A stretch of 64,000 bases of DNA. Origin: Monocercomonoides exilis PA203. Taxonomy: Eukaryota; Protista; Preaxostyla. Position numbers and translations under genes: made by a program. Shown piece after piece: positions 492 to 57,371 of the stretch (position 1 is the first letter of the stretch; each line of letters starts with the position of its first letter). The stretch covers positions 355,424 to 419,423 of the forward strand of contig LSRY02000064.1 in the NCBI GenBank assembly GCA_001643675.2, read 5' to 3'. Below the pieces are notes generated by a model. That model was not told where the DNA came from. It did no database searches and was given only the letters and a program-made list of their open reading frames with translations.

Positions 492-3400
492 ATGGGCCCA
501 CATCCACAAAAAATATTGACGTTTGTCCTTTTGATTTCTTCGATTGTGAGTTGCAGTGCAGCGGGTGATCAGGAGCAGTTTGTGGGATACAAACATGAAA
601 AAGCAGAAACAAGAGCAGAAAAAGGAAAAGTGAGGAGATCCAAGAACCAGCCATGTTTGCTCAGAAATGAAATTGTGAGTGATTGGCACACAAAATATAA
701 GGAAGGAGGAGAGGAGAAGAAGAAGATGCACTCGAGCGTTTCTGAATGGATTAATGGATTTGGCAACAGCAAAGAGGCAAAAGGACAGAGCCAAAGAAAT
801 GAAAAGCAAAAAGAAGGAAATTCGCAACAAAGTGGAAATTTATATTCACTTTGCACAATAGGTTGTTTTCAGAGCCATTTTCTTCTTCTGAATTCCACAC
901 TTCTTCTGTTGTCTATTCAGCTGAATTCTCCAGGAGAAGAGGCAATGGTCTCAATTGGAGGAAAATCAGTTTTATTTTTTGAAGACTGCGAGATACGTTA
1001 TGAGGACGAGTCAAAGAGATCTCCGATCGAACTGCACACTGGCTCAGCAAGCTTTGTGAACATATCGCTTATTATTGAAGGGCAAACGCCACTCTTCCAT
1101 TCTCTTGCCTTTTCACCAAACGATATTTCTGTTGGCAGGACCAGAGCTGTGTCAATGATCCACTCAACATTTTCATCTGTGTTGCTTTCACCAACCCCAT
1201 TTTTGTGCAACGGGCCTTTATCGAGCATCTCGCTATTCAAGTGCACTTTCTCAAACATCACCAAAGCTACACCAGCAAAATCATCAAGAGGATCTGAGAA
1301 TGATTGTTTCACAAAAATTGATAGCTGCTCATTTGTTTCCGTGGAGGATGCGATTTATGGGGGAGTTGTGGATTCGATGTATTGCCCTCTGTCTTCGCTT
1401 CTTTCTGTGAATAATTCATATATCAGGTGCAATCGTCTGAGATTCACAGAAAACGAAGGAAGGAGGCAGATGGGAAGGCAAGTGCTCGGAAATGGGACAC
1501 ACACATTTGAGAGCTGCGAGTGGAGTGGATGCAATGCCACAAACGGAGCAGCAATATATTTGTATGATCAGCCTCAAGCATCTCTGAACATTTCGAATTG
1601 TATTTTCGACAAATGCACAGGAAACGAATCATTCGGTGGAGCTATTTCTACATGCAATATCTTAGGTTTAGTAATTGTGAAAAGCAATTTCACAGAATGC
1701 AAAATAGAAAAAGAAGGGGGAGGTGCAATTTATGCTGTTGTTGTGTCAACATTTTCGAGATTATTTTCTTTGCATTTCTTGAAATGCATTTGTGAAGGAC
1801 ATGGAGCAGGATTCTTTTTTGACAAGTTCAACATCAGTAGGGGAAATGATACAACCTCTGGAGCAATAGTGGAATGCACTTTTGACAGTAATGATGCAGG
1901 AAGAGGGTGGGGTGGAGCCTTTCGAATTGATTATTCACCAAAAGGTTTCTCTGTAAGATCCTGCAATTATTTGAGATGTGTTGGAGGAAAGGCTGGAGGA
2001 GCAATAACAATGGAACAACTTGAGTTTCATGATCAGAATCCAAGTTTGATATGGTTCTGTATGCTTCATGAATGCTTCACAAGAGATGCTGAACTTGATG
2101 ATTATAAGGGTCATGATGCTTATTTTTTTGATCCTTTATCCAAACGACTTTTTCAGACACCATTTGTTGAGTCATACACAACAAATTTAAAACAGTATCG
2201 AGTCACTTACAACAATAATAGCTGGAATTATCCTGATGAATGGATACCAATTGGGATTCATATCAACCCATGCTTCATTGGAGTCACAGGCAATGATAAT
2301 GAAGATCTTTGTGGATTAGAGGAAAGTCTGCCATGTAAGACACTTTTTCACTCAGTTGAGAAAAGCAACAGACAATGTTCATACGGAATTGTATTATTGG
2401 AAGGGAATCACATTTCTGAAAGAGAAAGTCTAAACATTAGGGAAAAAGAGATATTGCTCAGGGGAACAAGCAGAAATCGCACTGTTCTTCACTCTTCTGG
2501 AATTGCATCTCCGGATTCTTTGCTGTTTTCTGTGTCAACAGGCTCACTTTTGTTGGAGTCATTCACCATCCTGCACAACCATCAGTCGCCATCGATGCGA
2601 ATACTGGTGATGATCTCGTCAGAGGGGGAGTGTGGGTTGGATGATATGTGTGTGTATTCTCCTGAGTCGCAAACTCAAGTCGAGTTTGAGTGCTCGATGT
2701 TTGAGGTTGATCTGGGGCGTTTCTGGGTGAGAAACAGCCGGATTGAGAGATTCAAACTGTCTTCGGTGCTAATTGCTGATACGCTGCGCTCAGCATCAAC
2801 AATGGTGCTATTTGGGAATGTGACATTTGGTTGGATTGAGAGGGTATCAGGAGGAGGGAGTGTTGTGAACATGAAGATTGGTGATGGGGAAGGGGTTCGT
2901 GTGGAGAATGTGAGTGTGAATAACTGTTCGAGCGTGGGAGGAGATGGAGGTGGGATGAGGATAGAGATAGGAGATGGAGGATGGATGAGGCTTGGGGAAG
3001 AGAGGAGTGGAACAGAGATTTGTGGGTGTCTGGCAGAGGATGGGAGAGGCGGGGGGATAGCAGTGGTGATGGAGAATGCATTCTCATCGATGGTGCTGGA
3101 GAATGTTGTGTTCAGAGAGAACAGAGCCGTTTCAGGGAGAAATGTGTTTGTGATATCCCCGGATCTGGGGGTGAGTGTGTCGAGGGAATCATTCAAGTTC
3201 TTTTCAGGAGAAGCGCCATTTGGGGCAGAAGATGCAGCTGGGGTGGAAGTGGAGGCTCCTTTGGTGGTAATTCCGCTGGTATATTATCTGATGGAGAGGG
3301 AGGGGAATGTGAGTGTTGGAAGTGGTGGTGTGGATGTGGATGTGTGTGGGTTTGGAGCGTATCCATGCCGGACAGTGGGATATGGGGTGAGGCATCGGCA

Positions 3401-6400
3401 GCAAGAAGGAGGAGTGAGGCAGGTTGTGGTGCTTTCACCGTTCAAGCTGGAGGAGAGCATTGTAATGGGAGAGGATGCAGGGTGCATTGTCGGCGGGGTG
3501 GAGGAGAAAACTGTTGTGGAGGTTGTTGGAGATGGGAGAGGGAGGGGAGGAGTGATTGAGCTGAGGCGAATAGCGATTGTGAAGGAGATGAAGTTTGCAG
3601 TGGGAGGAGAGCTCCAGGGAAATGAAAGGTGTGTGGTGTACGTGAACAGCATCGGAGCGAATGTTTCTGTTCAAGATTGCATGTTTGTTGGGAAAGAGGT
3701 GGGGAATGAGATTGGATATCGGATAATGTGTTTGGAGAATGGGGAATGTTCAATCACTCGAGTGAGCGTTGAGGATGTGAGGTTCAGTGGGGTGGAAATT
3801 GTGGAGTGTTTTGGGGGGCAATCTGTTTTGAGCATTGTGAATATGAAAACGAGGAATGTTGGAGGAGCTTTTGGAAAGGGGCTGATCTCAGGAGAAAGGA
3901 TGCTGGGGGTGGAGATGAACAGCTCAGATTTTGTGTGTGGGGATGAATGCTTTGGAGGGATGGTGAGCGTGGTGCATGTGAAGAGAGCAGAAATGAAGAA
4001 CTGCACAGGAGTTGGGATTGGGAAGGGAGAAGGGGATGGGGCAGTGGTGAGAGGAGTTGTATCCAATGGGGAAGTGCTGATGATTGAGGGAGGTGAGATG
4101 AGCGGAGAGTGTGGAAGAGGGAATGGAGGAGGTGTTGGAGCTGTTTTGGAGGATGGAGGGAGGATGGAGTTGGGGATGGATTGGGGAGTTCGGATGAGGA
4201 ACTGCAAAGCGCTTGGAAGAGAAGAAGGGAAAGGGTTTGGTGGAGGTGTGTATATTGATGTGAGAGAAGGGGCAAGTTGGTTTGTGTTGAAAGGGATTGA
4301 GTTTGAGGGATGTGTTGCAGAAGCATCAGGAGGAGAAGTGTTTGTGAAGGCAATGGAGCTGAAGGGTGTTATTACAAGGGATTCAGTGGGATTAGCAGTC
4401 GAAATGATAGGGGAGACGAAGTGGACTGGTGTGGAGGAGGCCGACAGCATGTTGTTCATTCCTCTGTGCATCTATCTCCTCCCCACCCCAGAAGAAATAT
4501 ATGTGAGCAACGTCGAGGCATCCAATCACTCACATTGTGGAATAGTCGAGTTTCCTTGTTTGACAATGAAGCACTCCCTCACAAGACAAACAGGAGAAAA
4601 GAAAATTGTTGTGAATGGAATGATATTGATGAGTGATGAATTGGCATTTGCTGGACAGAAACATGAAATCAGAGGAAATGATGATCAGAGTGGTTGGACA
4701 GTTTCTGATACAACCACAGAAACAAACACAGCAATGGTGACAGTTGGAGTGGAAACAGTGCTTTCAGCACTTATCTTCTCTCTTCCATCTTCTCTTCCTC
4801 TTCACCAGACTTTCGTTTCATCTTCGTCACATTTGACTCTGTCTCATTGCTCTATATCTCTTCAAGATCCTTCGTCTGAATTGGCATGTCTATTCTTATC
4901 TGTTGATTCTGGTTCGTTGGTTATTGATTTCTTCTCTGCTTCGTCAATCACCTTGAGCACAACTCCATTGATTTCATTGTCTGGAAGCGGAACAAATGCG
5001 GAGTTAATGATCACCACGTGGTTGAACATGACGAACTGCACTTTCACAGAAATCGAAAGAGCAGCTGGAAGTGGAGGGTGTGTGAGCATTGGCAACAGCC
5101 ATGATGATAATGCAAACACACAAATAAATATTGAAGAGTGTGTTTTTGATGGATGCTCTGTGCTGGATGATGGAAGCAGAGGAGGGGCTATCGATGTGCA
5201 GATGAAAGGAAACATTCAAATGAATATTATTTCATGCACATTCACAGGATGTTCAGCACCAGCTGGAGAAGAAGGGAAAAGTGGGTTTGGCGGAGGAATG
5301 GCGCTGAAGTTGATTGATGGCGATTCTTCATTTGTGATTTCATCTCCTGTTTTTGATACAGACAAGCCAAATGCTGCGAGATATGGAAATAATCTGTTTG
5401 TTGAATCATCCAACTTGACAAAGAGCATCACAAATGACTCGCTCCCATTTGTGTCTGAGCATCTGGCTGATATTTCGTTGGATTCATTGAGCGGCTTTGA
5501 TGGAAGTGATAAAACGAATGCCATCCCGCTGGTCTATTTCTGGCGAAGATTTGGCTCAGAGATCGTTGTTGGGGGTGATGGAAAAGATGTGTGCATTTGT
5601 GGACTTTCAGATTATCCTTGCCTGTCAATCGACCATTCATTCACGAGATTGCCTGAAGGAAACGAAAGGAATATCAAGATCAATGGAAAAGGAATTCTTC
5701 AAAAGAGTGTTGATATCAGTGGGGTGACGATAAAATCGGAAGATAACGATGTGTGCTCACTGGAGTGTCTCTCATCGCTTGAAGGATCAGAAGGAGCAGC
5801 AATGAAGATTTGTGGAATAACCAATTTTGAATTGATCAAGTTTGTGATTCCTTCTTCATTCATGAGTGGAGTGAATTATTTGATGCATGTTGAATCAAGC
5901 GAGGGATTGTTGACTGTGAAGGACTGCTCATTCACAAAAAATGAAGAAAATGATGTGGAAGAGATTATGAATTATGGGCTGATCAAAGCAGATGGAGGGA
6001 CAGTGGTGTTGGAATTGGTGTCAATTCAATCACTCGGCTTTTCACATGATGTTGTTTCTGTGTTATCAACAACGATTTTGAACATTTATAATCTAACGAT
6101 GAAGAGCATTGAGCTGGAAGGAGCAAGCGGATTGAAAATATCAAAGAGTTCAAGAAGAGAGAAAAATGAAGAGGAACAAGATGTTCTCATTGAATGGAGT
6201 TCATTCGAAGAAGTCACTCAGAACACAACAGATGATATTCCCATCATTCGAAATGACAATGATGTTGAGCCTTTGAAAATAGTGATGCGAAACACAACGA
6301 TGAAGAAGTGTGGAGGAACGAGGTGTGGAAAGGGAGGAGGGATGTTTTGCATGTTGAATGAGGGAGGAAGCTTTGTTTGCTCGTTTTGCACGATTTCTGA

Positions 6401-9400
6401 GTGTTTCTGCTCCACCACAGGAAGAGGTGGGTGGCTGTTTCTGGAGTGTTCCTCAGTGGCTGAGCATCCTCTGAGCTTTGTGCTGTCGAATCTCACCTTC
6501 AAAGACAACACTGCATTGAGAGGGAGAGATGCGTATGTTCGATGCCACTCAATCGAAACACAGATAGTTGATGAGCAGTTCTTGCTGGATTTCAGAGCAC
6601 CTTTTGTGAAGGAGCTGGCGATGTGGGGCTGTTCAACAGACTCGTTTGAGGGGGAAGAGGATCTTCTTCTAAGGGTTGTGAAATACCAGAGCGAGACGAT
6701 ATTTGTGTCGGCTTGTGCAGAGAATCACTCTGATTTCAATTCCTGTGGAGAATTGCATGGGCCGTGTGAGTCATTGAATGTGGGAGTGAAGCACATCATC
6801 CCGTCGTCGTACTCGCAGCTGTTGATATCAAAGGAAACAGCGATGAGAGGGAAATGCAGCATTCACAATGTTGTTGTCCATCCTCTGGAATCTCCTCCAG
6901 CTGCTTTGGTGCATCTGAGCTTTGCAATTGTTAATGATGCAGGAGGTGTTATCACAACATCAGGGAAAGTTCGGGTTGAGAGTGTGAAATTCGACTTTGG
7001 CCAGTCGTTTTCATTTTCAGGCAGTTCTGTTGTTCATGAAACAAGTGGCCAACTTTCCCTTTCATTTGTTGATTTTTCATCAGTTGGAGGGTCAAACAGC
7101 ATTCAACCTGTTGTTCTCAACTCATCGTTGCTGAGCATTGAAAGTGGAATTGTTCATGTTGACAACTGCTCAGTGTCACTCCTTTCATTCAAGAAGCCTT
7201 CATTTCTGTTGAGTGGAGATGAGATTTCGTTGACGAATGTGAAACTGGAAGAGATTGAATCAACAGCAGATGTGTTTGAGATTGGCAGTTGTGGAATAAT
7301 GTCCATTAATGGAGTATCTGCAGATGGAGTGAAGCTGTCAGATGGTTGCATCCTTGCAATTGGCAGTTCATCTTCAGGAACAATATCTGTTGGAAGCTCG
7401 TCATTCGACAACTGCTCAAGGAATTCAGAAGGAGCATCTGTTCTTTCGGCTTCTTCAACCTCTGCTCATTTTGAATTTTCAAACTGTTCCTGCACAAAAT
7501 GTTATTCTCTGTCTGACAAAGGAAGGGTCATGGAAGTGATCAACATGAAAGATGCTTATTTGAATATGTGTGAGTTTGAAGGTTTGTTAACGAGCAAAGC
7601 GTTATTGGAGCATGAAAATGACATGAAAGAAATATGTGAATGGAATGGATCGGTTGTCCATTCAACGAATTCAACGATGGTGATGAAATACACAACTATT
7701 TCAAATGCTTCATCAGGTGGATTTTCGGTGTCGGCTGGCGATGTGACAATCGAGAAAGGAGAGTTTTTGAACAACAATCCTTTCATCGAAAAATACCCTT
7801 CTCTTCGTCGAAACATCATCTGTTCAGATTCTGCCTCACTGACCATTTCGAGCTTGAAAGGTGGAGATGGACTGATGCCCAATTCTTCGTTTTGGATTTT
7901 GAATGATGGATGCACACTTGGAGGAATAGCAGGAGAAAGACCATCGTCTTTCTTCATTCCCAGACTGGAAGAGGTTTCTGTGAATGAAAGTGGAAGCAAG
8001 ATTTTTATCCAATTCAAGGGATCTCTTTTTGTGCCATGTGACTTGTCTTTCAGACTTGTGTATAAAACAGGGGATGTGGAGTTGGTTGAGACATATCGTT
8101 TTGAGGAAGACAGTTTTGTATCAGAAAATGAAGTGATTGGAAGAGTTCCATCAGAAAATATTTCATTGGCTTCAGATGAAACAGAGGTGTCAGTGACGAT
8201 TCTGTTTGGAAAGCAATCGGCAGAGACATTTCCGCTGATTCTGAAAAACAGAAGTGAACCCAAAGGAAATGGAGATGAAAGGATTGTTGAAGGAAGAAAA
8301 GAGGGGAAATCGATATGGCCTATTATTGTGATTATCCTTGTTGTGATATTATTGATTGTTCTCATCGGATTTATTTTGTTTGCTATCCGATGGAAGAAGG
8401 CAAAGAACGAGAACAAAGATTTGAGAGAGATTGTGAATGAAACAGTGAAGAAGGATCCAAAAGCATTTGAGATGGTGACGATGGAGATGTCACCAGAGGA
8501 GCAGTGGAGGAGAGCAGAGAGGGAAGCTGAAAAGAAGAACGAAGAGAGGATGAAGAAGAGGGTGTACGAGAAAAGCTTGGGACACTCCGAGTCATCGGAG
8601 CATTTGTTGAGTGAGAGTGGATCGACTGAATACATCCTTGGAAGAGATTCAGACAAGATTCCAGAATGGATGTTGGAAAAGGTTGAAGAAGAGGAAATTA
8701 GAAAGCAGGCTCCATCACCATCCATTTCATCCACCTCAACCACAGACACTTCAGACACAGATTCAACATTTGTTCGTGGAGAGGATCTATGCCCAACCAC
8801 CTCATCAATGTCAAATCTGGTGGATGCAATGGCATGTTCTTCGCCTCATGAGAAGCTGATTGTGGATCTTCGAGACTCGTTGTTCATGTTGCTTCATGGA
8901 AAGAATAAGACAAAGGAGATGGCAATTGGCACGCTTCAGGAGAGAGAATATACAGCTGTCCAAATCCTGTTCTGGGTGGCGAATGGAGCTCTCCACTCGT
9001 TTGATGAATGTGAGGTTCCACTTCAGTCGCTGACAAATCTGAGTCCACACATTGTGTTGTTCTCAGAACACATGGTCATTTGTGTTGCAATGCATTCTGA
9101 TTGTTCTTCTTCAGATTCAGACTCATCCTCGATATCTTCATCTACTGTTGTGACATCTACCAGTGATGATGGTGATGAAAGAGATTCTCTGCCCTCATCA
9201 GCTTTTGAGGATGAGGATGCCTTCAGAAAGGAGTGCCTGAGATGGAAGGCACCTGAATTGCTGAATGGCACAAAGAAGCGTGCGACGAAGAAGACAGTTG
9301 TGTTCTCGATTGGGATGATGTTGTGGGAGTGCCTGACACTCAAAGTTCCATTTGGGGAGTATGAGGCAGAGGTGGCAGGGCAGAAGATAGTAAATGGGGA

Positions 9401-9623
9401 AAGGCCGTGTGGAGGGGAGAGTGAGGCAAGTGGGATGCATGAGATGGTGAAGGGATGCTGGAGGGCAGAACGAGGGGAAAGGGTGACGTTGATGTGGGTG
9501 AAGCGGGAATTGTTTGGGCATTTCCCAGGAGAAGCAGCGGCGATGACGATGACGGATGCAATTTTATATGAGGAGAGCAAAGACAACATCTCGAGCTGCG
9601 AGAGTCTTGTGGAATATTTTTAA
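492..9623 (+). CDS. Giant single-pass receptor-like protein, paralogue A (signal peptide, GGA-repeat beta-helix-like head, 5 Cys-motif modules, TM, pseudokinase)
   Basis: 3043-aa uninterrupted ORF. Hydrophobic N-terminus (KILTFVLLISSIVSCSA), GAAI/GGAI/GGAF repeats, five CGxxxxPC-type motifs (Cys codons at ~2310, 3345, 4536, 5598, 6744), TM WPIIVIILVVILLIVLIGFILFAI followed by RWKK, kinase C-lobe motifs RWKAPE / VFSIGMMLWECLT / GERP without HRD or DFG. Confidence 0.9.
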   Translation: MGPHPQKILTFVLLISSIVSCSAAGDQEQFVGYKHEKAETRAEKGKVRRSKNQPCLLRNEIVSDWHTKYKEGGEEKKKMHSSVSEWINGFGNSKEAKGQSQRNEKQKEGNSQQSGNLYSLCTIGCFQSHFLLLNSTLLLLSIQLNSPGEEAMVSIGGKSVLFFEDCEIRYEDESKRSPIELHTGSASFVNISLIIEGQTPLFHSLAFSPNDISVGRTRAVSMIHSTFSSVLLSPTPFLCNGPLSSISLFKCTFSNITKATPAKSSRGSENDCFTKIDSCSFVSVEDAIYGGVVDSMYCPLSSLLSVNNSYIRCNRLRFTENEGRRQMGRQVLGNGTHTFESCEWSGCNATNGAAIYLYDQPQASLNISNCIFDKCTGNESFGGAISTCNILGLVIVKSNFTECKIEKEGGGAIYAVVVSTFSRLFSLHFLKCICEGHGAGFFFDKFNISRGNDTTSGAIVECTFDSNDAGRGWGGAFRIDYSPKGFSVRSCNYLRCVGGKAGGAITMEQLEFHDQNPSLIWFCMLHECFTRDAELDDYKGHDAYFFDPLSKRLFQTPFVESYTTNLKQYRVTYNNNSWNYPDEWIPIGIHINPCFIGVTGNDNEDLCGLEESLPCKTLFHSVEKSNRQCSYGIVLLEGNHISERESLNIREKEILLRGTSRNRTVLHSSGIASPDSLLFSVSTGSLLLESFTILHNHQSPSMRILVMISSEGECGLDDMCVYSPESQTQVEFECSMFEVDLGRFWVRNSRIERFKLSSVLIADTLRSASTMVLFGNVTFGWIERVSGGGSVVNMKIGDGEGVRVENVSVNNCSSVGGDGGGMRIEIGDGGWMRLGEERSGTEICGCLAEDGRGGGIAVVMENAFSSMVLENVVFRENRAVSGRNVFVISPDLGVSVSRESFKFFSGEAPFGAEDAAGVEVEAPLVVIPLVYYLMEREGNVSVGSGGVDVDVCGFGAYPCRTVGYGVRHRQQEGGVRQVVVLSPFKLEESIVMGEDAGCIVGGVEEKTVVEVVGDGRGRGGVIELRRIAIVKEMKFAVGGELQGNERCVVYVNSIGANVSVQDCMFVGKEVGNEIGYRIMCLENGECSITRVSVEDVRFSGVEIVECFGGQSVLSIVNMKTRNVGGAFGKGLISGERMLGVEMNSSDFVCGDECFGGMVSVVHVKRAEMKNCTGVGIGKGEGDGAVVRGVVSNGEVLMIEGGEMSGECGRGNGGGVGAVLEDGGRMELGMDWGVRMRNCKALGREEGKGFGGGVYIDVREGASWFVLKGIEFEGCVAEASGGEVFVKAMELKGVITRDSVGLAVEMIGETKWTGVEEADSMLFIPLCIYLLPTPEEIYVSNVEASNHSHCGIVEFPCLTMKHSLTRQTGEKKIVVNGMILMSDELAFAGQKHEIRGNDDQSGWTVSDTTTETNTAMVTVGVETVLSALIFSLPSSLPLHQTFVSSSSHLTLSHCSISLQDPSSELACLFLSVDSGSLVIDFFSASSITLSTTPLISLSGSGTNAELMITTWLNMTNCTFTEIERAAGSGGCVSIGNSHDDNANTQINIEECVFDGCSVLDDGSRGGAIDVQMKGNIQMNIISCTFTGCSAPAGEEGKSGFGGGMALKLIDGDSSFVISSPVFDTDKPNAARYGNNLFVESSNLTKSITNDSLPFVSEHLADISLDSLSGFDGSDKTNAIPLVYFWRRFGSEIVVGGDGKDVCICGLSDYPCLSIDHSFTRLPEGNERNIKINGKGILQKSVDISGVTIKSEDNDVCSLECLSSLEGSEGAAMKICGITNFELIKFVIPSSFMSGVNYLMHVESSEGLLTVKDCSFTKNEENDVEEIMNYGLIKADGGTVVLELVSIQSLGFSHDVVSVLSTTILNIYNLTMKSIELEGASGLKISKSSRREKNEEEQDVLIEWSSFEEVTQNTTDDIPIIRNDNDVEPLKIVMRNTTMKKCGGTRCGKGGGMFCMLNEGGSFVCSFCTISECFCSTTGRGGWLFLECSSVAEHPLSFVLSNLTFKDNTALRGRDAYVRCHSIETQIVDEQFLLDFRAPFVKELAMWGCSTDSFEGEEDLLLRVVKYQSETIFVSACAENHSDFNSCGELHGPCESLNVGVKHIIPSSYSQLLISKETAMRGKCSIHNVVVHPLESPPAALVHLSFAIVNDAGGVITTSGKVRVESVKFDFGQSFSFSGSSVVHETSGQLSLSFVDFSSVGGSNSIQPVVLNSSLLSIESGIVHVDNCSVSLLSFKKPSFLLSGDEISLTNVKLEEIESTADVFEIGSCGIMSINGVSADGVKLSDGCILAIGSSSSGTISVGSSSFDNCSRNSEGASVLSASSTSAHFEFSNCSCTKCYSLSDKGRVMEVINMKDAYLNMCEFEGLLTSKALLEHENDMKEICEWNGSVVHSTNSTMVMKYTTISNASSGGFSVSAGDVTIEKGEFLNNNPFIEKYPSLRRNIICSDSASLTISSLKGGDGLMPNSSFWILNDGCTLGGIAGERPSSFFIPRLEEVSVNESGSKIFIQFKGSLFVPCDLSFRLVYKTGDVELVETYRFEEDSFVSENEVIGRVPSENISLASDETEVSVTILFGKQSAETFPLILKNRSEPKGNGDERIVEGRKEGKSIWPIIVIILVVILLIVLIGFILFAIRWKKAKNENKDLREIVNETVKKDPKAFEMVTMEMSPEEQWRRAEREAEKKNEERMKKRVYEKSLGHSESSEHLLSESGSTEYILGRDSDKIPEWMLEKVEEEEIRKQAPSPSISSTSTTDTSDTDSTFVRGEDLCPTTSSMSNLVDAMACSSPHEKLIVDLRDSLFMLLHGKNKTKEMAIGTLQEREYTAVQILFWVANGALHSFDECEVPLQSLTNLSPHIVLFSEHMVICVAMHSDCSSSDSDSSSISSSTVVTSTSDDGDERDSLPSSAFEDEDAFRKECLRWKAPELLNGTKKRATKKTVVFSIGMMLWECLTLKVPFGEYEAEVAGQKIVNGERPCGGESEASGMHEMVKGCWRAERGERVTLMWVKRELFGHFPGEAAAMTMTDAILYEESKDNISSCESLVEYF

Positions 9624-12547: not shown

Positions 12548-12776
12548 GTTCAATTTCTTTCTTTATAATTTTCAAAAATTCACCAATATTTTGATCTGCA
12601 GTTATAATTATTTTCTGAAATTGATAATTATTAAAAACAATCCCATACGGTTATAAATTGAATTTGTTAACCAGCAATAGACTCTTTATCATTTCATGTG
12701 GATTTTTCATTTTCGAAGTATATGCAAGATCTATTAAGATCGAAAACAGAGACTTTTGCCTTAATCCATTTGAAAC

Positions 12777-17310: not shown

Positions 17311-17345
<35 letters not shown>

Positions 17346-36328: not shown

Positions 36329-36515
36329 CCTTTCCAAGAAATAAACAACCAATTACTTTTGGGAAAGATCAATAAAAATTAAATAAACTGGATATATAAA
36401 AGGCTTTTAACATTGGAATCTCATGAAAAATTGTGAAGTGCAATAACTCAAATAATGAAATGAACGAATGAGAAATATAGAGAAATAAACAAAGAAATGA
36501 AAGGAATTTCCATAT

Positions 36516-48200: not shown

Positions 48201-51200
48201 GTGGAAGTGGAGAGCAGTGGAAATGGGGAGCAGGAAGGAGTTGTGGAGACGAGTGTGAAAGCATGGATTGGGGATTTGAGTGTGTGCGTGGGAGATGGAA
48301 TGGGGGTGTATCAGGCAGTGGTGGTGTGTCGAAGTGGGGTTCTGAGTATGAGCAAGTGTGGGATGAAGGGAAGCGTTGGTGTGGTTGGGCTGAGCTTTGC
48401 GAAAGTGGTTGGAGGTCAGGTGGAAATATCAGAGATGGGGATATCAGCCATTGAATTTGGGGAAGCATCTGTGCTGGTTGCAGGAGGAGGGAGCAGAAGA
48501 AACAGCAGCAATGATGGAAGTTGCTGTTTGAAAGTGAATGACTCTGTGTTTGAGCAGATAAGGATGAGGGATGGGAGTGTTGTGAGGTGTGGAGATGGGG
48601 TAGATGTGAATGTGAAGAACTGCACATTCACGAGGGTGAGTCGCACAAGCGGAAGCGGAGGGAGTGTTTGTGTGGAGGATGGTCAGAGCACAAAGGAGAC
48701 AGCTGTTGTGGTTTCAGAAAGTGAATTTGAGGAAAGTGTTGTTGAAGGGGATGGGGCAGGAGGAGGAGGAATCTGGGGGAGGGTTACTGCAACAAGAAAG
48801 GTGGAAATTGGATCTTGCACATTGAAGGGGTGCAGAGCACCGAGTGGAGAGAAAAGGGGGTATGGAGGAGGGATGTATCTGGACGTTGTGGAAGCGAGTG
48901 CTCCCTTTGTGGTTGCAGCACCACAGTTCACAGGAGAGAATCCGAATGCTGCGAAGGAAGGAAATAACTTGTTTGTTGTGTCACCGAATCTGATGGTGAG
49001 CATGAGCAACAGCACACTTCCATTTGCAGCAGAAATGGAAGGGATGGAGTTGGATTCGATGCGAGGATTCAATGGATCTGATCGGAGTGAGAGTATCCCG
49101 CTGATCTTGTATTTCAAAGAGGTGGGATCGAAGATATATGTGTCAGGGGAAGGAGGAAAAGATATAGCAGTTTGCGGGTTTGATGAATATCCGTGCAAGA
49201 GTGCTGATTATTGCCTGGCGAGGCTGGGATCAAAAGAAGAGAAACAAGTGGCTGTGAAAGGGAGCGTGACAATGGAAAGGGAAATTGATCTGAGCGATGT
49301 GGATATTCGGGGAGAAGGTGAAAGGAGAGCAGAGATGGATGTGATTAGTGTTGTGGAAAGGGTGAGTGGGAAGATGATGAGATCTCAGGGAGTGACAAGA
49401 ATTCGCAAGCTGGATATTAAATTGCCTGCTCAACTTGGGAATGGGATGAGTGCTGCCTTCTATTCATGGGCTGTGGGAGGAGAGTTGAAGATTGAGGACT
49501 GCTGGATGGGGATGAAAAGTGGGGAGGCTGAGGAGATTGGGTATTGTTTAATATGCGCTGAAGGGAAAGTGCTGAGCTTGAATTGGGTGAGGATTGAGGA
49601 TATGAAGTCATCCCAGCCGTTATTCAGTCTGAGCTTAATCCCCATTGCTGCAGAGGAGGAGAGAGGAAACAATCGGTCTATTGAAATAAGAAACAGCTCA
49701 TTTACAAGTGTGACAATACCCGCAAATGATTGTGTAGCACTTTTTGGATCGAGGATTGAAGTTGGTCTTGAGATGGAAGAATGCAACATTTCTGATGTTG
49801 TGTCTGAGGGGAGCGGTGAAGGAGGGGCAATGAAATTCGTTGTGGAGGGATTAGGATGGGTTGAAGTGATGAAGTGCATGATTGATGGATGCAAGGCAGA
49901 GACAACAGCTTTTGGGAAAGGAGGAGGAATATACGTTGAGTGTGGAAGAGGATTTCCAGTTTCTTTTTCAGAGATAGTGTTTGAGAGATGTGATGCTTAT
50001 TGTGGGAAAAACATATTTGCGAAGGGATACAAGTTGTGGAGTGATATTGAGAAATCAAAGTTGAATGTGGAAATACCATTAGAAAAGGAGAGATTGAACG
50101 AGTTTGTTGGATATGATGAGGAAGAGTCAGTGTTGGTTCCGTTGGCAGCGTTTGTGGCAGTGTTGGAAGGGAAGGGATATGTGGGAGGAGAAAGTGGGAT
50201 AGATTATCCGAAGTGCGGAAATGAGTGGTTTGCATGCAAGACAATTGGATATGTGGGGGAATGGCGGTTCAGAGGCGAGAAGGCGGATGTATTGCTGCAG
50301 AATACGTTTTGTTTCAGAGACCTGATTGTGCTTGATGAACAAAGTTTTGAGATTTGTGCTCAAAATGAGGGAGGCGAAGTTAGAGTTGAAGGAGGAGGAG
50401 GCGGCGGAGAAGGAAGTGGGCTAATTGAAATACAGAGCAACGTGCAGCTGGAAAAGATGGCTCTCGTGCTACCATCAGTGTTTGAGCCTGTGGCGAGAGA
50501 GTGCCTGTTTTTGAGCAAGTCAGCATCTCTGATGCTTGAAGAGATGGAGATAAAGATGGAGGCTTCCGGACAGGGATGCAAATATTGGATAGTGAAGAGC
50601 GTGGGAGGGAGTGTGAAAGTGAGAGGGATGGTGATAAGAAGGGCTGAGTTTACTGGGGCAGGGGTGATTGAGATGAGTGGAGCAGAGGTTCTGGGAAATG
50701 TGAATGGGCTTGTGATGGAAGAAATAAAGATGAAAGGTGTGGGAGGGCTGGTAGTGATGAAAGGAGGTGCGAAGGTGGAGGTGATGAACTCTTCTGTGAA
50801 GGAGGCTACGTTTGAAAACCATTGTGGAATGAGCTTGGAAAGAGGAAGTGGATTGGTGATGACAGAGTGCAACATGAGTGGAGTCAAGAGAGAGGGTGGG
50901 GATGGAGGAGGGGTGGCTGGAGTGGTTGGAAGCGGGCAAAGAGTGGAGATGAAGGGGTGTGTGCTCAAGACGATGGGATGCTCTTCGTCTGGATCTGGGG
51001 GAGGAAGCGTGAAGATGGTTGTGGAGAAAGGAGGAGAGTTTGTGTTTGACTCAAACGAGGTGCGTGAGAGCAAAGTACCAGCACTTGAAGGGAATGGAGG
51101 AGGGGCGCATCTGACGCTGGAAGACAAGGATCTGAGATATTCGATGAAGGGATTGATTCTTGAAGAGAACGACGCGAAATACGGGAAGGACGTGTATCTA

Positions 51201-54200
51201 GTTTGTCCATCACCGAGAGAAATTGTTGATCCTCAGCTGTGGAGTGGGAGCGCATCAAAGGAAGAAGAGGAGAGACGAAAGTGGGTGGTGGATCCAGGGG
51301 ACGAACGGATGAACATGACTCTGTTGAGGTTTCTGTTTCCGCTGGATGAGGATATTATTTATGTGGATGAAGAATTGGGGAGAGAGGTTGATGGATGCGG
51401 ATCGAGTGTGAACCCCTGCAACGAACTGGGATATGGATATGGGAAGCTGGGAGATGCGAAAACAATCCTGCACATCCAGTACAAAGCGAAACTTGTGAGC
51501 TTGATTGAGAGAGCAGATGCAAAGCTGACGATTCGAGGGGAAGAGTTGAAATCTGAGCTTATTGTTGAAGAAGCAGGGCGTGTGGTGCTTAAATCTGGAA
51601 CACAGTCAACGTGGTTGACTTTCCAGAACGTTGTGTTCACATTGCATGGAAGTGGAGGAGAATATGATGATGTGATTGTGGGAAATGTGGGGCGAGTGTG
51701 GATTGTGGGCTGTGAATTTGGGAGCAAGAATGGAACTCAGGCTGAGTGCTCGAGGTGGATTGTTTGTGGGGGAGGGAGCAGTGTACAGATTGAGAACTCG
51801 ACTGTTGGAGCGCTTGAGTTTGTTGGAAGAGGAGGACTGTGCAAGATAACATCGGGAAGTGTGGTGATGGTGGGATGTTTTGTGGAAGATGTGAAGGGAA
51901 AAGAGAACAGTATGATTATGTGTCAAGAAGGAGCAAGCGTGTGTGTGAATGGAACAACGATAACTGGATGCGAAATGGGGAGCGGAGGACTGATAGAGGC
52001 AAGAAACGCATCGACTGTGGAAATTTTGGAGGGAACAAAATTTGAAGGATGTTCATCTGATTCAGGAGATGGAGCATGCCTTCACTGTGAGGTTGTGGGG
52101 AGCAGGAGAGTTGCAATAAAGAATGCAGTATTCAAAAGATGTATTGTGAATGAAAGATGTGGAAGAGGAGGAGGGATTTATCTGAGGTTGAAGGATGATG
52201 TGGAGAGTGACATAGAACTGTCTGGTCTCGAATTTGGAGAGAACATTGCTTTTGCAGGAAGAGATGTGTTTGTGGAGTGCGAAGAGCTGAACAAGTCAGT
52301 GAAAGCGGAGAGACTACAGATTGAGATGTTTGATACAGATGGGAGGCAGATTGCGTTTATGGAAGGAACTGACAACGGAGCTTTTAATGGGCTTGTGGTG
52401 GATCTTGGACTGTTTTTATTTCAGTATTGCTCAGGAACAGTTGCCGTGTGCAGCCAGACAGGCATTGATATTGCGGGGTGTGGAAGAGCAGAGATGCCAT
52501 GCAACACTTTCTGGTCTGGGTTTCAGCATGTGAATTGGCCAGCTTCAGGGATGAAGCAGATGGTGCTTGAGGGGACAATGAGTGTCCGCGACACGTTTTG
52601 CGTGTCTTTGCTGAGAATTGTTTCGTCAAGTGATGAAAAAAACTGTGTTATCCACTTTGAGGCAGATCTGGAAGCAGTCGAGGGGGATGAAGTGTTTTTG
52701 GCATCAGAAGATGCTTCTTTCAGTGGCATTTCATTTGTTATTCCATCAGCATTTGCACCAGAGAGAGTCTGCTTGGTTTTACTGGATCCAGAAGCAGCAT
52801 CCTTTGCAGAGTTTAGTTTCAAAAACTGTTCATTCCAGTATGTCGAATCCGTGAAAGGAAATATAGCAATTGGGTATTGCTTGATTGAAGCAAAAGGAGG
52901 GATGGTTGGGATAGAGAACTGCACATTTGGAAACTTCTTATTTAGCACACCTCCACTTGTATTTTTATCTGCCGCAACAATCGATGGATGCACATTTGAG
53001 TCGATGGAAACACCAAATAGCAAGCAAGGAGGAGCAATAAAAGTGAATTTTGGAGCAAATTATCAGCTCATCGTAAAGAAGACGAAATTAATAGGATGTG
53101 GATGTTCAATGGAGGAAGGAAAGGGAGGAGGAATGTATGTGGACTGCACGGAATCAACAGCTGACGAGCCATTTGTGTTTGAAAACATGATGTTTGAGAT
53201 GAACAAGGCGTTTGCAGGAGAAAACATTTTTGTTGTGAGTTCGTGCTTGAACAGGACAGTAACAGAGCGTTCATTTCTGTTTAGCTATGAGCAAACGAGC
53301 ACCAATGGAAAGGAGTTTATGGGGAGTGATGATCAGTTTGTCGATACAGATCTGCTGCGTTTCTTGGTGTTGTACAAGAGCAGTACGATCCATGTGTCAT
53401 CAAGTGGAGCGGATGTGAAGCGTTGTGGAAGTGAGGCTGAACCATGCCAATCGTTCTGGAGCGGAATGAGCCATATTGTGAGAAATGAAAGTGGGATGGA
53501 AATTGCTATAAGTGGAGAAACAACAGTTGCTGATGAATATGATGTTTCAATGCTCAGGATTGGATCATATGGGAGTGACGCAGGAGAACAGTTGAAAGGG
53601 AAAGTGATAATTGTCGGAAAACAGAGTGGCAGGACAGGAGGATATTTTGTGAACAGAGAAAGATTGGAAGTAGAATTGATTCACTTTGTGATAAGAGCGC
53701 AATTTGACAGTTTGTCAAACTGCGTGATTGTGAACGAGGAAGGGAGATTAGAAGTTAAGAAGTGTGGAGTTGAGATGAGGGATGTGAACGGTGATGTGGC
53801 TGGATGCAGTTTTGTGGAGATGAGGAAGGGAGAATTGAATGTGGAAGGGTTGGAAATGGAAGCATCGGTGATCGAAAAGAGTGTATTTGTGATTTTTGAA
53901 GAGTGCCGATGCAAGTGCAAAGGGTTGAGCCTTCTTGCAACAGAAATAAGGAGAGGGTGTCTGTTTGAGATTGCTAATGGGTTGGGCAGAGCAAACGAAA
54001 GAGGCAAACTTGAATTGAATGACTCTTCATTGAGCATGATATCGAGAGGAGGCAATGGAGGAAGCGTCATCCATATTGGTGCAACGGGAGGAGGAGCTGG
54101 AGCGGATAATGTGAGTGAGATGGATGTGGAAGTGAGCAATTGCGAATTTGTTGATTGCAAGGCAGAAGCAAGCATGGGTGGGGGAGTGATGTTTGTGTGG

Positions 54201-57200
54201 CTGAGGGAAGGAGGAGCGCTGAGGGTGAGAGACACAACAATGATGAGGTGCAGCTGTTCGAGTCAGGGGAGAGGAGGAGGGGTGTATATTGGAACAGATT
54301 TAGGAGGGAAGCTGGACTTTGTGTTTGAGAGGATGGCGTTGAAGGGGAACACGGCTGGGGTGGGGAATGATATATATGTGCGGTGTGTGAACATCAGTCA
54401 GCAGATCAACGAGACTCAGTTCCGGTTCTCTCTGAGAGAGAGCGATTACTCGAGGAGGAATGCGATCTTCGGATGTGACACGACAGACCATGTGCTGGAC
54501 ACGGATCTGATGGATTTCATCACGATATACGAGAGCGACATGATTGTTGTGTGTTCGTTGGATGAAAAGAAAGGGAAGGACGCTCGGCAGTGTGGAACAG
54601 CAAAATTGCCGTGTGTGAGTGTGGGATATGGAGCGCAGCATCTGACGAATGAGCTGATGAGCGTGATGCTTGTTGATGAGGTATCGGTGATAGAGGGAGA
54701 AGTGAGTCTGAAGAACATGACTCTTGAGTCGCGATCAAAGAGCACAGCAAGAGTGGAGGTGGTGAATGGGATGGAGCAGACAAGGGAGTGTGTGATTGAG
54801 GTTACAGAGCATGTGGTTCTGTCATTTGTGAGATTTGAATTTGGAGAACGGATGCTGAATGGGTACTCGGTGTTTATATCTGTTGTGAATGACAGTGTGA
54901 GTGTGGAAAATTGTGTCTTTGGAGCGTTGGAACCTTCTGCAACATTGTGTGTCGTTCCATTCTGTTTAATCCATATAACTGCAGGAGAAGGATTGATAGG
55001 TGGATGCAGTATTTGTGGGCTATCATTTTCTGAAGCAATATTTGAAATTGAGCACAGCTCATTCACAATTTCATCTTGCAACTTCACAGAAATGGAATGC
55101 AGGAATAATGTTGTGAGGCAATGCGAGGGGAATCTGGCTGTGAGGAACAGCTCGATATCGATAAAGGATGAAGAAGGAACTTGTGAGGCAGGAGTGAGTT
55201 GTTCATCAGTTTCGTCAGTTCAGATGGAGTCATGCACGATTAGAGGGAGATCCGTGGAGAATGAGAAGGGGTGTGTTGTTTCATTTGTGAAGTGTGGAAA
55301 TGTGAAGATTGATTCGTGCTCATTTCTGGGAAGCACAACTGGAAGTGAAAAGGAGAATGGTTTCAAGGGAGATGCAGACATCTGCTTGTGGAATGGCTCC
55401 ATTGTCAGTGTTGATAATTGTGAGGTGTTGATGAAAGATTCCACAATATCGAATTCATCAGAAGGTGGAATCACAATTAGTGGAGGAAATGTGAATATTG
55501 AGAAAGGAGAGTTCATTGACAACAATCCATCGATTGAAGGATATCCATCATTGAGAAGAAACATCATCTGTTCAGATTCTGCCTCACTGACCATTTCGAG
55601 CTTGAAAGGTGGAGATGGACTGATGCCCAATTCTTCGTTTTGGATTTTGAATGATGGATGCACACTTGGAGGAATAGCAGGAGAAAGACCATCGTCTTTC
55701 TTCATTCCCAGACTGGAAGAGGTTTCTGTGAATGAAAGTGGAAGCAAGATTTTTGTCCAATTCAAGGGATCTCTTTTTGTGCCGTGTGACTTGTCGTTCA
55801 GACTTGTGTATAAAACAGGGGATGTGGAGCTGGTTGAGACATATCGTTTTGAGGAAGACAGTTTTGTATCAGAAAATGAAGTGATTGGAAGAGTTCCATC
55901 AGAAAATATTTCATTGGCTTCAGATGAAACAGAGGTGTCAGTGACGATTCTGTTTGGAAAGCAATCGGCAGAGACATTTCCGCTGATTCTGAAAAACAGA
56001 AGTGAACACAAAGGAAATGGAGATGAAAGGATTGCTGAAGGAAGAAAAGAGGGGAAATCGATATGGCCTATTATTGTGATTATTATGGCAATAATTCTCA
56101 TAATTGTTCTCATTGGATTTATTTTGTTTGCTATCCGATGGAAGAAGGCAAAGAACGAGAACAACGATTTGAGAGAAATTGTGAATGATAACATCAGAAA
56201 AGATCCGAAGGCATTTGAGATGGTGACGATGGAGATGTCACCGGAGGAGCAGTGGAGGAGAGCGGAGAGAGAAGCTGAAAAGAAGAATGAAGAAAGGATC
56301 AAGAAGAGGGTGTATGACAAGACGATGGAACATTCAGAGTCATCAGAGCATTTGTTGAGTGAGAGCGGATCAACAGAATATATCCTAGGAAGAGATTCAG
56401 ACAAGATTCCAGAATGGATGTTGGAAAAGGTTGAAGAAGAGGAAATTAGAAAGCAGGCTCCATCACCATCCATTTCATCCACTTCAACCACAGACACTTC
56501 AGACACAGAATCCACATTTGTTCGTGGAGAGGATCTGTGTCCAACCACTTCATCCATGTCAAATCTGGTGGATGCGATGGCCTGTTCATCGCCGCATGAA
56601 AAGCTGATTGTGGATCTGAGAGATTCGTTGTTTATGTTGTTGCATGGAAGGAATAAGACAAAGGAAATGGCAATTGGCACTCTGCAGGAGAGGGAGCAGA
56701 CAGCTGCCCAAATTCTATTTTGGGTTGCGAATCTTGCTCTTCACTCGTTTGATGAAATGGAGAACAAGCTTCAGTCACTTGCCAATTTGAGTCCGCTCAT
56801 TGTGCTGTTCTCAGAGCATATGGTGATCTGCATTGCCCTCCACTCTGACTGCTCTTCTTCAGATTCAGACTCATCCTCAATATCTTCATCAACAGTTGTG
56901 ACATCAACCAGTGAGGATGATGATGAAAGAGATTCTCTGCCCTCATCAGCGTTTGAAGATGAAGAAGATAACAGGAATGAGTGTTTGAGGTGGAAGGCAC
57001 CTGAATTGCTGAATAGAACAAAGAAGCATGCGACGAAGAAGACAGTTGTGTTCTCGATTGGGATGATGTTGTGGGAGTGTCTGACACTCAAAGTTCCGTT
57101 TGGGGAGTATGAGGGGGAGGTGGCAGGGCAGAAGATAGTGAATGGGGAAAGGCCGTGTGGAGGGGAGAGTGAGGCAAGTGGGATGCATGAGTTGGTGAAG

Positions 57201-57371
57201 GGATGCTGGAGGGCAGAACGAGGGGAAAGGGTGACGTTGATGTGGGTGAAGCGGGAATTGTTTGGGCATTTCCCAGGAGAAGCAGCGGCGATGACGATGA
57301 CGGATGCAATTTTATATGAGGAGAGCAAAGACAACATCTCGAGCTGCGAGAGTCTTGTGGAATATTTTTAA
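45270..57371 (+). CDS. Giant single-pass receptor-like protein, paralogue C (8 Cys-motif modules, TM, pseudokinase)
   Basis: 4033-aa uninterrupted ORF with signal peptide. Module Cys codons at ~46992, 48036, 49173, 50214, 51396, 52479, 53424 and 54591. From ~55558 it is near-identical to A (from ~7810) and B. Confidence 0.9.
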   Translation: MMPSRYHLFLFAIAVLFVREIDAEIVSKENEDLLLKGELITDSSKEKGRYTEIKNNCKPEYSNYRKQRGKDDGGNKNQEIGKKANQKNGFNEMIDCFICEGLIECSTLNSHFVVLNSTLEACCVLFVQKTLNGMVELIGNSVLKIKSVLIDFNSQSEVSAFVARGGEIYFESISALPTGLSRPIQSFVANEQDGDESTIKVSFVKSTLRQISIASSSSCLVQGLAGNVNIHECCFINVSQCMKQKRKVTLPQSQMKWVKCEVENSEFVGCDNPQYGAVIVPTEETLKMKNSSFERCTITHTPVNGSRNSYSSGDVVASSIVFSDMTSKIEPCLAIYAEKTATLIIDSCVFRNISSNIDRSLYGGAVHHEGNGYHKSRGCNYTNCSSKYAGGALNIETKGDKFVQSCIIIGSSSMHYSGVFLNFVSNNSIFNNNLVRECTASNYGADAGVFVGNNTAIFSECKFSSCISDNYCGTLSFVWLEEGSSAGIVYIYFCIFDNNTVKMKDGGCDIGSWNGSYYINKVVKESFVSSFSLSTQSVRVMIGGINHTEWLPNPPIENLFVHVSSVLGDDSRSGCGCEVIPCQSIGKGVFQRKDGQWLIVSEGAYSHDCLPVLDMNVNLNGGNMETSTLTSCGTGNGKALFEVTTGSLAIEHFKIVHSSSESDPGSSVAAMSGNGKMELSDCEVRSKEEDSVPFTKSMIVVEQGLATFRFVGFMNFRSSKQLISFSSPTEISVEAVEFHSITRTIGDGAVLEVNVKSGEELSLNNISFDKCKSCGGNGGGVWVELERGGTFEMGNTSDVSKGVRMRECEAMVNENTGKGGCGGGVYINVGDGVDSFVLKRVQFVGCIAVKGKSLFVNAEQLSGLINRNSIGFDLVQSDLEELRGRESSIMDEGASVPLVVFLWTNTTSFGHVGGKDGVDFSRCGFEEAPCSSIKQAINVWFSEKNRFIKIQSPFVLSEELSVNSYEWNITGSEPETQVEVESSGNGEQEGVVETSVKAWIGDLSVCVGDGMGVYQAVVVCRSGVLSMSKCGMKGSVGVVGLSFAKVVGGQVEISEMGISAIEFGEASVLVAGGGSRRNSSNDGSCCLKVNDSVFEQIRMRDGSVVRCGDGVDVNVKNCTFTRVSRTSGSGGSVCVEDGQSTKETAVVVSESEFEESVVEGDGAGGGGIWGRVTATRKVEIGSCTLKGCRAPSGEKRGYGGGMYLDVVEASAPFVVAAPQFTGENPNAAKEGNNLFVVSPNLMVSMSNSTLPFAAEMEGMELDSMRGFNGSDRSESIPLILYFKEVGSKIYVSGEGGKDIAVCGFDEYPCKSADYCLARLGSKEEKQVAVKGSVTMEREIDLSDVDIRGEGERRAEMDVISVVERVSGKMMRSQGVTRIRKLDIKLPAQLGNGMSAAFYSWAVGGELKIEDCWMGMKSGEAEEIGYCLICAEGKVLSLNWVRIEDMKSSQPLFSLSLIPIAAEEERGNNRSIEIRNSSFTSVTIPANDCVALFGSRIEVGLEMEECNISDVVSEGSGEGGAMKFVVEGLGWVEVMKCMIDGCKAETTAFGKGGGIYVECGRGFPVSFSEIVFERCDAYCGKNIFAKGYKLWSDIEKSKLNVEIPLEKERLNEFVGYDEEESVLVPLAAFVAVLEGKGYVGGESGIDYPKCGNEWFACKTIGYVGEWRFRGEKADVLLQNTFCFRDLIVLDEQSFEICAQNEGGEVRVEGGGGGGEGSGLIEIQSNVQLEKMALVLPSVFEPVARECLFLSKSASLMLEEMEIKMEASGQGCKYWIVKSVGGSVKVRGMVIRRAEFTGAGVIEMSGAEVLGNVNGLVMEEIKMKGVGGLVVMKGGAKVEVMNSSVKEATFENHCGMSLERGSGLVMTECNMSGVKREGGDGGGVAGVVGSGQRVEMKGCVLKTMGCSSSGSGGGSVKMVVEKGGEFVFDSNEVRESKVPALEGNGGGAHLTLEDKDLRYSMKGLILEENDAKYGKDVYLVCPSPREIVDPQLWSGSASKEEEERRKWVVDPGDERMNMTLLRFLFPLDEDIIYVDEELGREVDGCGSSVNPCNELGYGYGKLGDAKTILHIQYKAKLVSLIERADAKLTIRGEELKSELIVEEAGRVVLKSGTQSTWLTFQNVVFTLHGSGGEYDDVIVGNVGRVWIVGCEFGSKNGTQAECSRWIVCGGGSSVQIENSTVGALEFVGRGGLCKITSGSVVMVGCFVEDVKGKENSMIMCQEGASVCVNGTTITGCEMGSGGLIEARNASTVEILEGTKFEGCSSDSGDGACLHCEVVGSRRVAIKNAVFKRCIVNERCGRGGGIYLRLKDDVESDIELSGLEFGENIAFAGRDVFVECEELNKSVKAERLQIEMFDTDGRQIAFMEGTDNGAFNGLVVDLGLFLFQYCSGTVAVCSQTGIDIAGCGRAEMPCNTFWSGFQHVNWPASGMKQMVLEGTMSVRDTFCVSLLRIVSSSDEKNCVIHFEADLEAVEGDEVFLASEDASFSGISFVIPSAFAPERVCLVLLDPEAASFAEFSFKNCSFQYVESVKGNIAIGYCLIEAKGGMVGIENCTFGNFLFSTPPLVFLSAATIDGCTFESMETPNSKQGGAIKVNFGANYQLIVKKTKLIGCGCSMEEGKGGGMYVDCTESTADEPFVFENMMFEMNKAFAGENIFVVSSCLNRTVTERSFLFSYEQTSTNGKEFMGSDDQFVDTDLLRFLVLYKSSTIHVSSSGADVKRCGSEAEPCQSFWSGMSHIVRNESGMEIAISGETTVADEYDVSMLRIGSYGSDAGEQLKGKVIIVGKQSGRTGGYFVNRERLEVELIHFVIRAQFDSLSNCVIVNEEGRLEVKKCGVEMRDVNGDVAGCSFVEMRKGELNVEGLEMEASVIEKSVFVIFEECRCKCKGLSLLATEIRRGCLFEIANGLGRANERGKLELNDSSLSMISRGGNGGSVIHIGATGGGAGADNVSEMDVEVSNCEFVDCKAEASMGGGVMFVWLREGGALRVRDTTMMRCSCSSQGRGGGVYIGTDLGGKLDFVFERMALKGNTAGVGNDIYVRCVNISQQINETQFRFSLRESDYSRRNAIFGCDTTDHVLDTDLMDFITIYESDMIVVCSLDEKKGKDARQCGTAKLPCVSVGYGAQHLTNELMSVMLVDEVSVIEGEVSLKNMTLESRSKSTARVEVVNGMEQTRECVIEVTEHVVLSFVRFEFGERMLNGYSVFISVVNDSVSVENCVFGALEPSATLCVVPFCLIHITAGEGLIGGCSICGLSFSEAIFEIEHSSFTISSCNFTEMECRNNVVRQCEGNLAVRNSSISIKDEEGTCEAGVSCSSVSSVQMESCTIRGRSVENEKGCVVSFVKCGNVKIDSCSFLGSTTGSEKENGFKGDADICLWNGSIVSVDNCEVLMKDSTISNSSEGGITISGGNVNIEKGEFIDNNPSIEGYPSLRRNIICSDSASLTISSLKGGDGLMPNSSFWILNDGCTLGGIAGERPSSFFIPRLEEVSVNESGSKIFVQFKGSLFVPCDLSFRLVYKTGDVELVETYRFEEDSFVSENEVIGRVPSENISLASDETEVSVTILFGKQSAETFPLILKNRSEHKGNGDERIAEGRKEGKSIWPIIVIIMAIILIIVLIGFILFAIRWKKAKNENNDLREIVNDNIRKDPKAFEMVTMEMSPEEQWRRAEREAEKKNEERIKKRVYDKTMEHSESSEHLLSESGSTEYILGRDSDKIPEWMLEKVEEEEIRKQAPSPSISSTSTTDTSDTESTFVRGEDLCPTTSSMSNLVDAMACSSPHEKLIVDLRDSLFMLLHGRNKTKEMAIGTLQEREQTAAQILFWVANLALHSFDEMENKLQSLANLSPLIVLFSEHMVICIALHSDCSSSDSDSSSISSSTVVTSTSEDDDERDSLPSSAFEDEEDNRNECLRWKAPELLNRTKKHATKKTVVFSIGMMLWECLTLKVPFGEYEGEVAGQKIVNGERPCGGESEASGMHELVKGCWRAERGERVTLMWVKRELFGHFPGEAAAMTMTDAILYEESKDNISSCESLVEYF

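Follow-up and report, generated by a model that had tools for sequence, protein, structure and literature searches.

Variable outer and conserved inner parts characterise two kinds of large family, plant receptor-like kinases and variant surface proteins such as VSG, VSP and var, both of which conversion and the swapping of domains have shaped; the former mostly keep whole kinase domains, and the latter, as variant antigens, have exclusive expression and switching as their defining traits. In the gut protist Entamoeba, the EhTMK family comprises ~90 genes encoding a signal peptide, a CXXC-rich ectodomain, a membrane span and a complete, partly active kinase domain of the TKL group, and includes many truncated copies (PMC2880585). 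The Pmp proteins of trichomonads and Chlamydia carry GGA(I/L/V) and FxxN/FxxC repeats on the coils of a beta-helix, and isolated non-catalytic kinase C-lobes that bind proteins are known as KIND from Spire, v-KIND and PTPN13 (PMC3415841). In Monocercomonoides exilis, the largest gene family has been published as 'protein tyrosine kinases', with 332 predicted members, 320 of them TKL (PMC6759080), and this family overlaps the 'unclassified repeats' of the nanopore assembly (PMC8767320). The available text of these two genome reports describes no ectodomain, membrane span, catalytic loss or mosaicism for its members.

Here, we analysed a 64,000-nucleotide stretch of the M. exilis PA203 genome (the window), whose end is the end of its contig and which contains three large genes designated A, B and C (Table 1). 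Each consists of a single open reading frame without introns or internal stops, coding for 3043 (A), 2601 (B, counted from the first ATG) and 4033 amino acids (C), and no alternative genetic code is needed to read them. The common plan comprises an N-terminal hydrophobic stretch interpreted as signal peptide, a head, 5 (A), 4 (B) or 8 (C) modules as counted by their Cys-cap motif (spacing 316–396 aa), one membrane helix (residues 2605–2634, 2159–2188 and 3596–3624, respectively) located about 410–440 aa before the C-terminus, and a shared tail that is 91–93% identical among the three proteins. Thus, the first-pass annotation, which had proposed three intronless paralogues of one plan with a nearly invariant cytoplasmic domain, is borne out. 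In A, B and C, Pfam matches were limited to the latter half of a kinase domain, plus one Beta_helix match in C. The annotated model of gene B omits its first 220 aa and 366 internal residues.

Table 1. Features of the window (positions count from its first nucleotide).
Feature	Position	Strand	Remark
Gene A (MONOS_5693): signal peptide, head, 5 modules (types 175-176-7-5-6), Ig-like domain, membrane helix, pseudokinase tail	492..9623	+	
A head, N-terminal beta-helix domain	561..2261	+	alignment with modelled B head
A modules 1-2, types absent from B	2262..4442	+	19-25% identical to B module 1
A modules 3-5 and stalk	4443..7955	+	94-98% identical to B modules 2-4
A juxtamembrane beta-sandwich, Ig-like by secondary structure only	7956..8294	+	97-99% identical across A, B, C
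A transmembrane helix	8304..8393	+	
A cytoplasmic linker, Ser/Thr/Glu-rich, predicted disordered, nearly invariant family-wide	8394..8807	+	
A kinase C-lobe-only pseudokinase; two-strand hairpin replaces N-lobe; G-loop, HRD, DFG absent	8808..9521	+	
A 3' flank	9624..10473	+	96.6% identical to C 3' flank
Housekeeping neighbour	11009..12553	-	
Housekeeping neighbour	13159..15210	+	
Gene B (MONOS_5690): head, 4 modules (types 1-7-5-6), Ig-like domain, membrane helix (20924..21013), tail	19682..27487	-	
B head and modules 1-2 as three separate right-handed beta-helix domains	23810..27370	-	model, pLDDT 85.5
Inverted repeat	28205..29250		
Acidic ORF pieces	30488..31815	-	
Housekeeping neighbour	33004..34527	+	
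Housekeeping neighbour	35876..36352	-	
Housekeeping neighbour	38944..42453	-	
ISXO2-like DDE transposase	43031..44152	-	
Gene C: head, 8 modules, Ig-like domain, membrane helix (56055..56141), tail	45270..57371	+	
Arm of 8.5 kb inverted duplication	55443..63932		mirror is the start of contig C60, 99%
DIRS-like retroelement	~58900..63900	+	
RNase H-like frame of DIRS-like element	61177..62004	+	
Tyrosine recombinase frame of DIRS-like element	62685..63647	+	
Hairpin at contig end, centre of the palindrome	63790..63979		

To characterize the ectodomains, AlphaFold2 models were built with 84–88 family sequences. They predict a right-handed parallel beta-helix with a capping helix, i.e. the pectin-lyase-like fold, for the head and for each modelled module separately (Z 20–27), as had been suspected from the repeats. 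In the model of the B head and its first two modules, residues 72–497, 499–829 and 844–1184 align as three separate beta-helices (Z 20–25), whereas the last module of A (pLDDT ~85–95) was compared together with the stalk and matched right-handed beta-helices such as AlgE4 (Z 27.4, rmsd 2.8, 312 residues aligned), PL6 lyases, tailspikes and the PfbA adhesin. An all-beta sandwich of ~95 aa precedes the membrane helix. Each head contains 2–4 GGA(I/L/V) and 3–5 FxxN motifs, FxxC being as common as FxxN; the Chlam_PMP model of Pfam gave no match, and Chlam_PMP clusters lie near in the Atlas. A variable basic loop at residues ~300–330 of the heads of A, B and C, between two conserved segments, could be a protease cleavage site.

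The tail had been taken for a pseudokinase, and this identification could be sharpened: it is a kinase C-lobe lacking the N-lobe. According to the models, the disordered linker is followed by helices D–I of a kinase C-lobe, and the strands ahead of helix D are limited to one hairpin. Correspondingly, the Pfam kinase match begins at profile position 102–167, and an N-lobe with Gly-rich loop and VAIK lysine was not found, while a C-lobe fold with APE and helices E–I, nearest to TK/TKL, is present. Foldseek matched the tail to TrkA, BTK, RIPK1, ILK and CTR1, and phmmer to Src, CSK and TAK1; comparison of four tails with the Pfam KIND model gave no match up to E = 5. None of the 112 aligned tails has a G-loop, HRD or DFG, and HRD and DFG are also missing from the distant metagenomic relatives P0216 and P0219. 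Judged from these sequences, the tail is predicted to be unable to bind ATP or to catalyse. Its dN/dS of 0.08–0.10 indicates strong purifying selection; it seems to be a separate, independent instance of a kinase reduced to its C-lobe and maintained in this way.

The family is large, as the first-pass annotation had anticipated. In the assembly searched (82.3 Mb, 101 contigs), a 24-base degenerate tail pattern matched 862 times as compared to 0 for the reversed control, and a stalk pattern matched 577 times (control 23). These counts point to a family of at least 860 predicted giant membrane proteins, occupying by rough estimate 5–9% of the genome. The published 'tyrosine kinase' family almost certainly consists of the same genes, its count in the accessible text being 332 vs. 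at least 862 here; a few members are annotated as Tyr or Ser/Thr kinases. The tail copies are dispersed, with a median gap of 66 kb among the matches listed. Open frames of at least 2500 aa were present in 72 of the 103 closest copies, where the longest frames range from 2500 to 4100 aa and fall into size classes near 2600, 3050, 3300 and 4100 aa. In about 30% of these 103 copies the open frames are shorter than 2500 aa, and many copies may therefore be broken. Outside M. exilis, a word-based search of low sensitivity yielded only metagenomic relatives, namely P0216 and P0265 with the same plan and P0219 and P0232 with the tail. L031 (Logan SRR13490893) and L032 (JGI 3300038763) are distant relatives (tail identity 25–28%) with a membrane helix and the same half-kinase, and L031 carries modules too. 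One Preaxostyla cluster is present in the Atlas.

Comparison of the three genes revealed how members differ. A tract of 4958 bp is common to A and B (94.8% identity). It starts abruptly at position ~4457 in an IPL motif that ends a module, and upstream thereof their proteins are only 19–25% identical. Hence, the change from foreign to B-type modules in gene A coincides exactly with a module boundary; the third-position G content is 0.34–0.43 in modules 1–2 as compared to 0.20 downstream. The EukProt model of gene A, which we take to stem from an earlier 454 assembly, differs by one residue, and the chimeric gene is therefore probably no artefact of a single assembly. From position ~9300 onwards, A matches C instead, including 850 bp of 3' flank, a similarity that, like the tract common to A and B, is absent from the first-pass annotation. 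In the region between these two points, informative sites among A, B and C alternate in tracts (174 like neighbours vs. 79 expected; 0 of 20,000 shuffles). The Ig-like domain is nearly identical in all three proteins, yet the last module of C is only 22% identical to that of A. A close kinship of this module with that of the 4-2 lineage was considered and dismissed, as the two are only about 40% identical. The modules of C are 94–98% identical to those of MONOS_107, located on another contig, except near the stalk.

A set of 121 paralogues, biased to tails close to that of A and based on partly wrong, often truncated gene models, displayed module-type strings such as 1-7-5-6, 1-13-11-12, 3-9-8-10, 3-15-9-8-10, 3-18-4-2 and 16-14-17-4-2. 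In this set, type 1 precedes 7-5-6, 13-11-12, 54-7-5-6 or 46-13-11-12, type 3 precedes 9-8-10, 15-9-8-10 or 18-4-2, and 16-14-4-2, 16-17-4-2, 14-17-4-2 and 16-14-17-4-2 all occur. No type appears twice in any string of these genes, which rules out tandem copying of modules within a gene; their number changes by insertion of other types. In 23 of 29 mapped switches, the switch point is no more than 150 aa ahead of the next cap, where ~7 are expected, the events being not fully independent. This zone is the conserved Gly-rich module end, and the switch points are spread over it rather than confined to one site, as expected of homologous recombination. A fixed recombination site is thereby dismissed, and no V(D)J- or VLR-like recombination signal was found at the junctions. 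Tails and ectodomains have separate histories: tail dS is ~1.0 both within and across ectodomain types (0 of 156 pairs saturated), whereas last modules across types are 25% identical, with 61 of 156 saturated. On a quick tail tree, ectodomain types change 25 times (minimum 4, shuffled 39). Pairs of different type with C-termini more than 85% identical make up 14 of 76 on the same contig as compared to 0 of 3843 on different contigs. By these sequence comparisons, tails are patchworks exchanged among genes of the same contig and decoupled from their ectodomains. Simple whole-gene duplication is ruled out by this decoupling, the tail tree and the tracts among A, B and C. Taken together, the proposal that recombination alters these genes holds for module content and extends to the pairing of tail and ectodomain, providing a clear case of domain shuffling combined with local tail homogenisation. 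The codon choice in the stalk motif, which is common along a contig (C1 and C7 vs. C2 and C5), is another sign of local homogenisation.

Neighbouring copies are arranged in a characteristic manner. Among the 96 tail matches listed, all seven pairs closer than 10 kb are oriented tail-to-tail. Such pairs recur 3.5–9 kb apart on contigs C1, C6, C7, C9, C36 and C50, and three of them have identical scores with partners of unequal open-frame length. Arm-to-arm conversion within these palindromes would homogenise tails and could provide a route for tail exchange. An 8.5 kb palindrome is centred on the hairpin at the window's end, its other arm being G000:C60:1-8478; in this mirror, the tail of C follows a module of A/B type, with a gap of one base close to where they meet. 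The palindrome centre may be where the two contigs connect; lying at a contig break, the palindrome is possibly an assembly artefact. A second, perfect inverted repeat (501-nt arms, 44-nt spacer) located 700 bp upstream of gene B had no match among 32 genomic loci compared and is either a foldback element or an assembly artefact. Furthermore, the window contains a DIRS-like retroelement with interrupted frames, of which at least 20 further copies exist elsewhere at 77–83%, and, 1.1 kb upstream of gene C, an ISXO2-like transposase of the IS1595/Merlin type. The housekeeping neighbours include a legumain-like C13 peptidase and exons of a Y-family polymerase, according to Pfam, and STT3-like, AMPK beta-like and 14-3-3-like genes by inspection only. 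Two acidic, helical-looking ORF pieces without clear Pfam family possibly represent another repeated family.

The heads were initially regarded as unique and as candidates for diversifying selection. They look unique among A, B and C, being only 17–21% identical, but the B head shares 48–60% identity with the heads of further same-type genes, and heads are thus typed rather than unique per gene. Within a type they are the most diverged part (dS 1.1 vs. 0.5 for inner modules). Their dN/dS, averaged over the head, is 0.19–0.35 and gives no sign of average diversifying selection; purifying selection acts all along the ectodomain.

We favour, with moderate confidence, a reading in which the germline encodes a repertoire of receptors that would bind, probably, gut microbes or glycans and whose non-catalytic tails would serve for docking, and rank it ahead of four alternatives. 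Outside, these single-pass proteins would expose a head followed by 4–8 beta-helix domains, each with its own cap, carried by an Ig-like stalk; inside, the conserved linker and C-lobe would most likely dock a common partner, so that many binding ends may converge on one non-catalytic output. Diversity arises by ordinary homologous recombination: through crossovers in the Gly-rich module ends, paralogues exchange, gain or lose entire domains, and short conversion tracts among chromosome neighbours homogenise stalk, tail and 3' flank. M. exilis grazes bacteria on an unknown basis of prey selectivity (PMC12308965), and the beta-helix fold commonly binds polysaccharides; therefore, bacterial or gut glycans would be the likeliest ligands, for prey capture, adhesion or sensing. 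Display at the plasma membrane is not a given, since Trichomonas Pmp fusions reside mostly in ER/Golgi or lysosomes (PMC6701047). A more far-reaching and rather doubtful version holds that beta-helix domains recombine continuously within cell lineages, helped by the tail-to-tail palindromic pairs. With a restricted subset expressed per cell and all members signalling via one common partner of the half-kinase, such a combinatorial recognition system would generate clonal variation in prey or host recognition.

Antigenic variation, the analogy drawn in the first-pass annotation, appears unlikely. It would imply a coat family of which one or few members are expressed at once. By switching, or by conversion of the copy in use, cells would escape host antibodies or predators, and the constant tail would control trafficking or feedback. 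Hundreds of dispersed copies that are variable outside and constant inside and diversified by recombination, active conversion among neighbours and many truncated copies that could act as donors fit this idea, and Entamoeba offers a precedent in TMKB1, a family member that is selectively expressed (PMC2880585). However, no expression site or cassette array was seen, conversion is strongest in the intracellular tail and 3' flank, which is the opposite of what coat switching needs, and the dN/dS of the heads likewise argues against it. Positive evidence for the analogy did not emerge, as nothing points to programmed switching and crossovers scatter across the module ends. It is also quite unlikely that the proteins are mainly coat or glycocalyx spacers, that is long N-glycosylated, disulphide-stabilised rods anchored in the cortex by their tails, whose diversity reflects largely neutral turnover. 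The 33–49 sequons per ectodomain, a Cys content of 3–5%, purifying selection throughout the ectodomain and the protein-binding capacity of a lone C-lobe exemplified by KIND (PMC3415841) agree with such a role, but ~176 module types at ~25% identity exceed the diversity a spacer needs.

The structural matches raise the further idea of membrane-tethered lyases, hydrolases or depolymerases that degrade bacterial capsules or gut glycans, given that the best ones are epimerases, PL6 lyases and phage tailspike depolymerases. This we consider improbable: identity to these enzymes is just 6–14%, and a common fold by itself shows no function. The residues conserved across 176 module types are structural (Gly, Cys, Phe, Asn) and form no catalytic pattern; only two Asp are conserved in more than half of the types, both in end motifs, so that no shared enzyme site is evident, a comparison across types from which single types or heads may differ. 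Selfish or neutral amplification, i.e. a repeat family that has multiplied through segmental duplication, palindromes and conversion and is mostly devoid of function, is very improbable. Although intronless, dispersed copies overlapping the 'unclassified repeats' (PMC8767320), inverted tail-to-tail pairs and many broken copies would suit it, the tail dN/dS of ~0.09 at dS ~1, which reflects purifying selection, and the long open frames in 72 of 103 copies weaken this explanation. In addition, the unit contains no transposase or terminal repeat, and a distant metagenomic relative has the same plan with modules, membrane helix and kinase remnant.

Thus, the largest gene family of a model amitochondriate eukaryote is re-identified as predicted giant beta-helix membrane proteins with a half-kinase tail, not tyrosine kinases. 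On the receptor reading, its members would be candidate receptors by which this flagellate may choose among bacterial prey. Like EhTMK, the family is an expansion in a gut protist combining signal peptide, ectodomain, membrane span and a TKL-related domain, with many truncated copies; unlike EhTMK, it has chains of beta-helices and a C-lobe-only remnant. Its heads carry a few motifs resembling the repeats of trichomonad and chlamydial Pmps, and the trichomonad proteins also have a membrane span. However, the family lacks the autotransporter barrel, the C-termini of A, B and C consisting of membrane helix and kinase remnant, arranges several capped domains in series and carries a kinase-derived tail in place of the short endocytic tails of Pmps. 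The tail resembles KIND in being a lone C-lobe devoid of catalytic residues, a likeness that is probably convergent; the M. exilis tail, unlike KIND, is nearest to TK/TKL, keeps APE and the helix G region and belongs to a membrane protein. Similar to plant receptor-like kinases and VSG, VSP and var, the family is large, variable outside and conserved inside, with conversion and domain swapping, but its half-kinase differs from the mostly whole kinases of plants. Taken together, it resembles the expanded transmembrane kinase-like repertoires of protists; what sets it apart from them is the chaining of beta-helix domains, a tail reduced to the C-lobe, and domain shuffling, which the sequence comparisons demonstrate.
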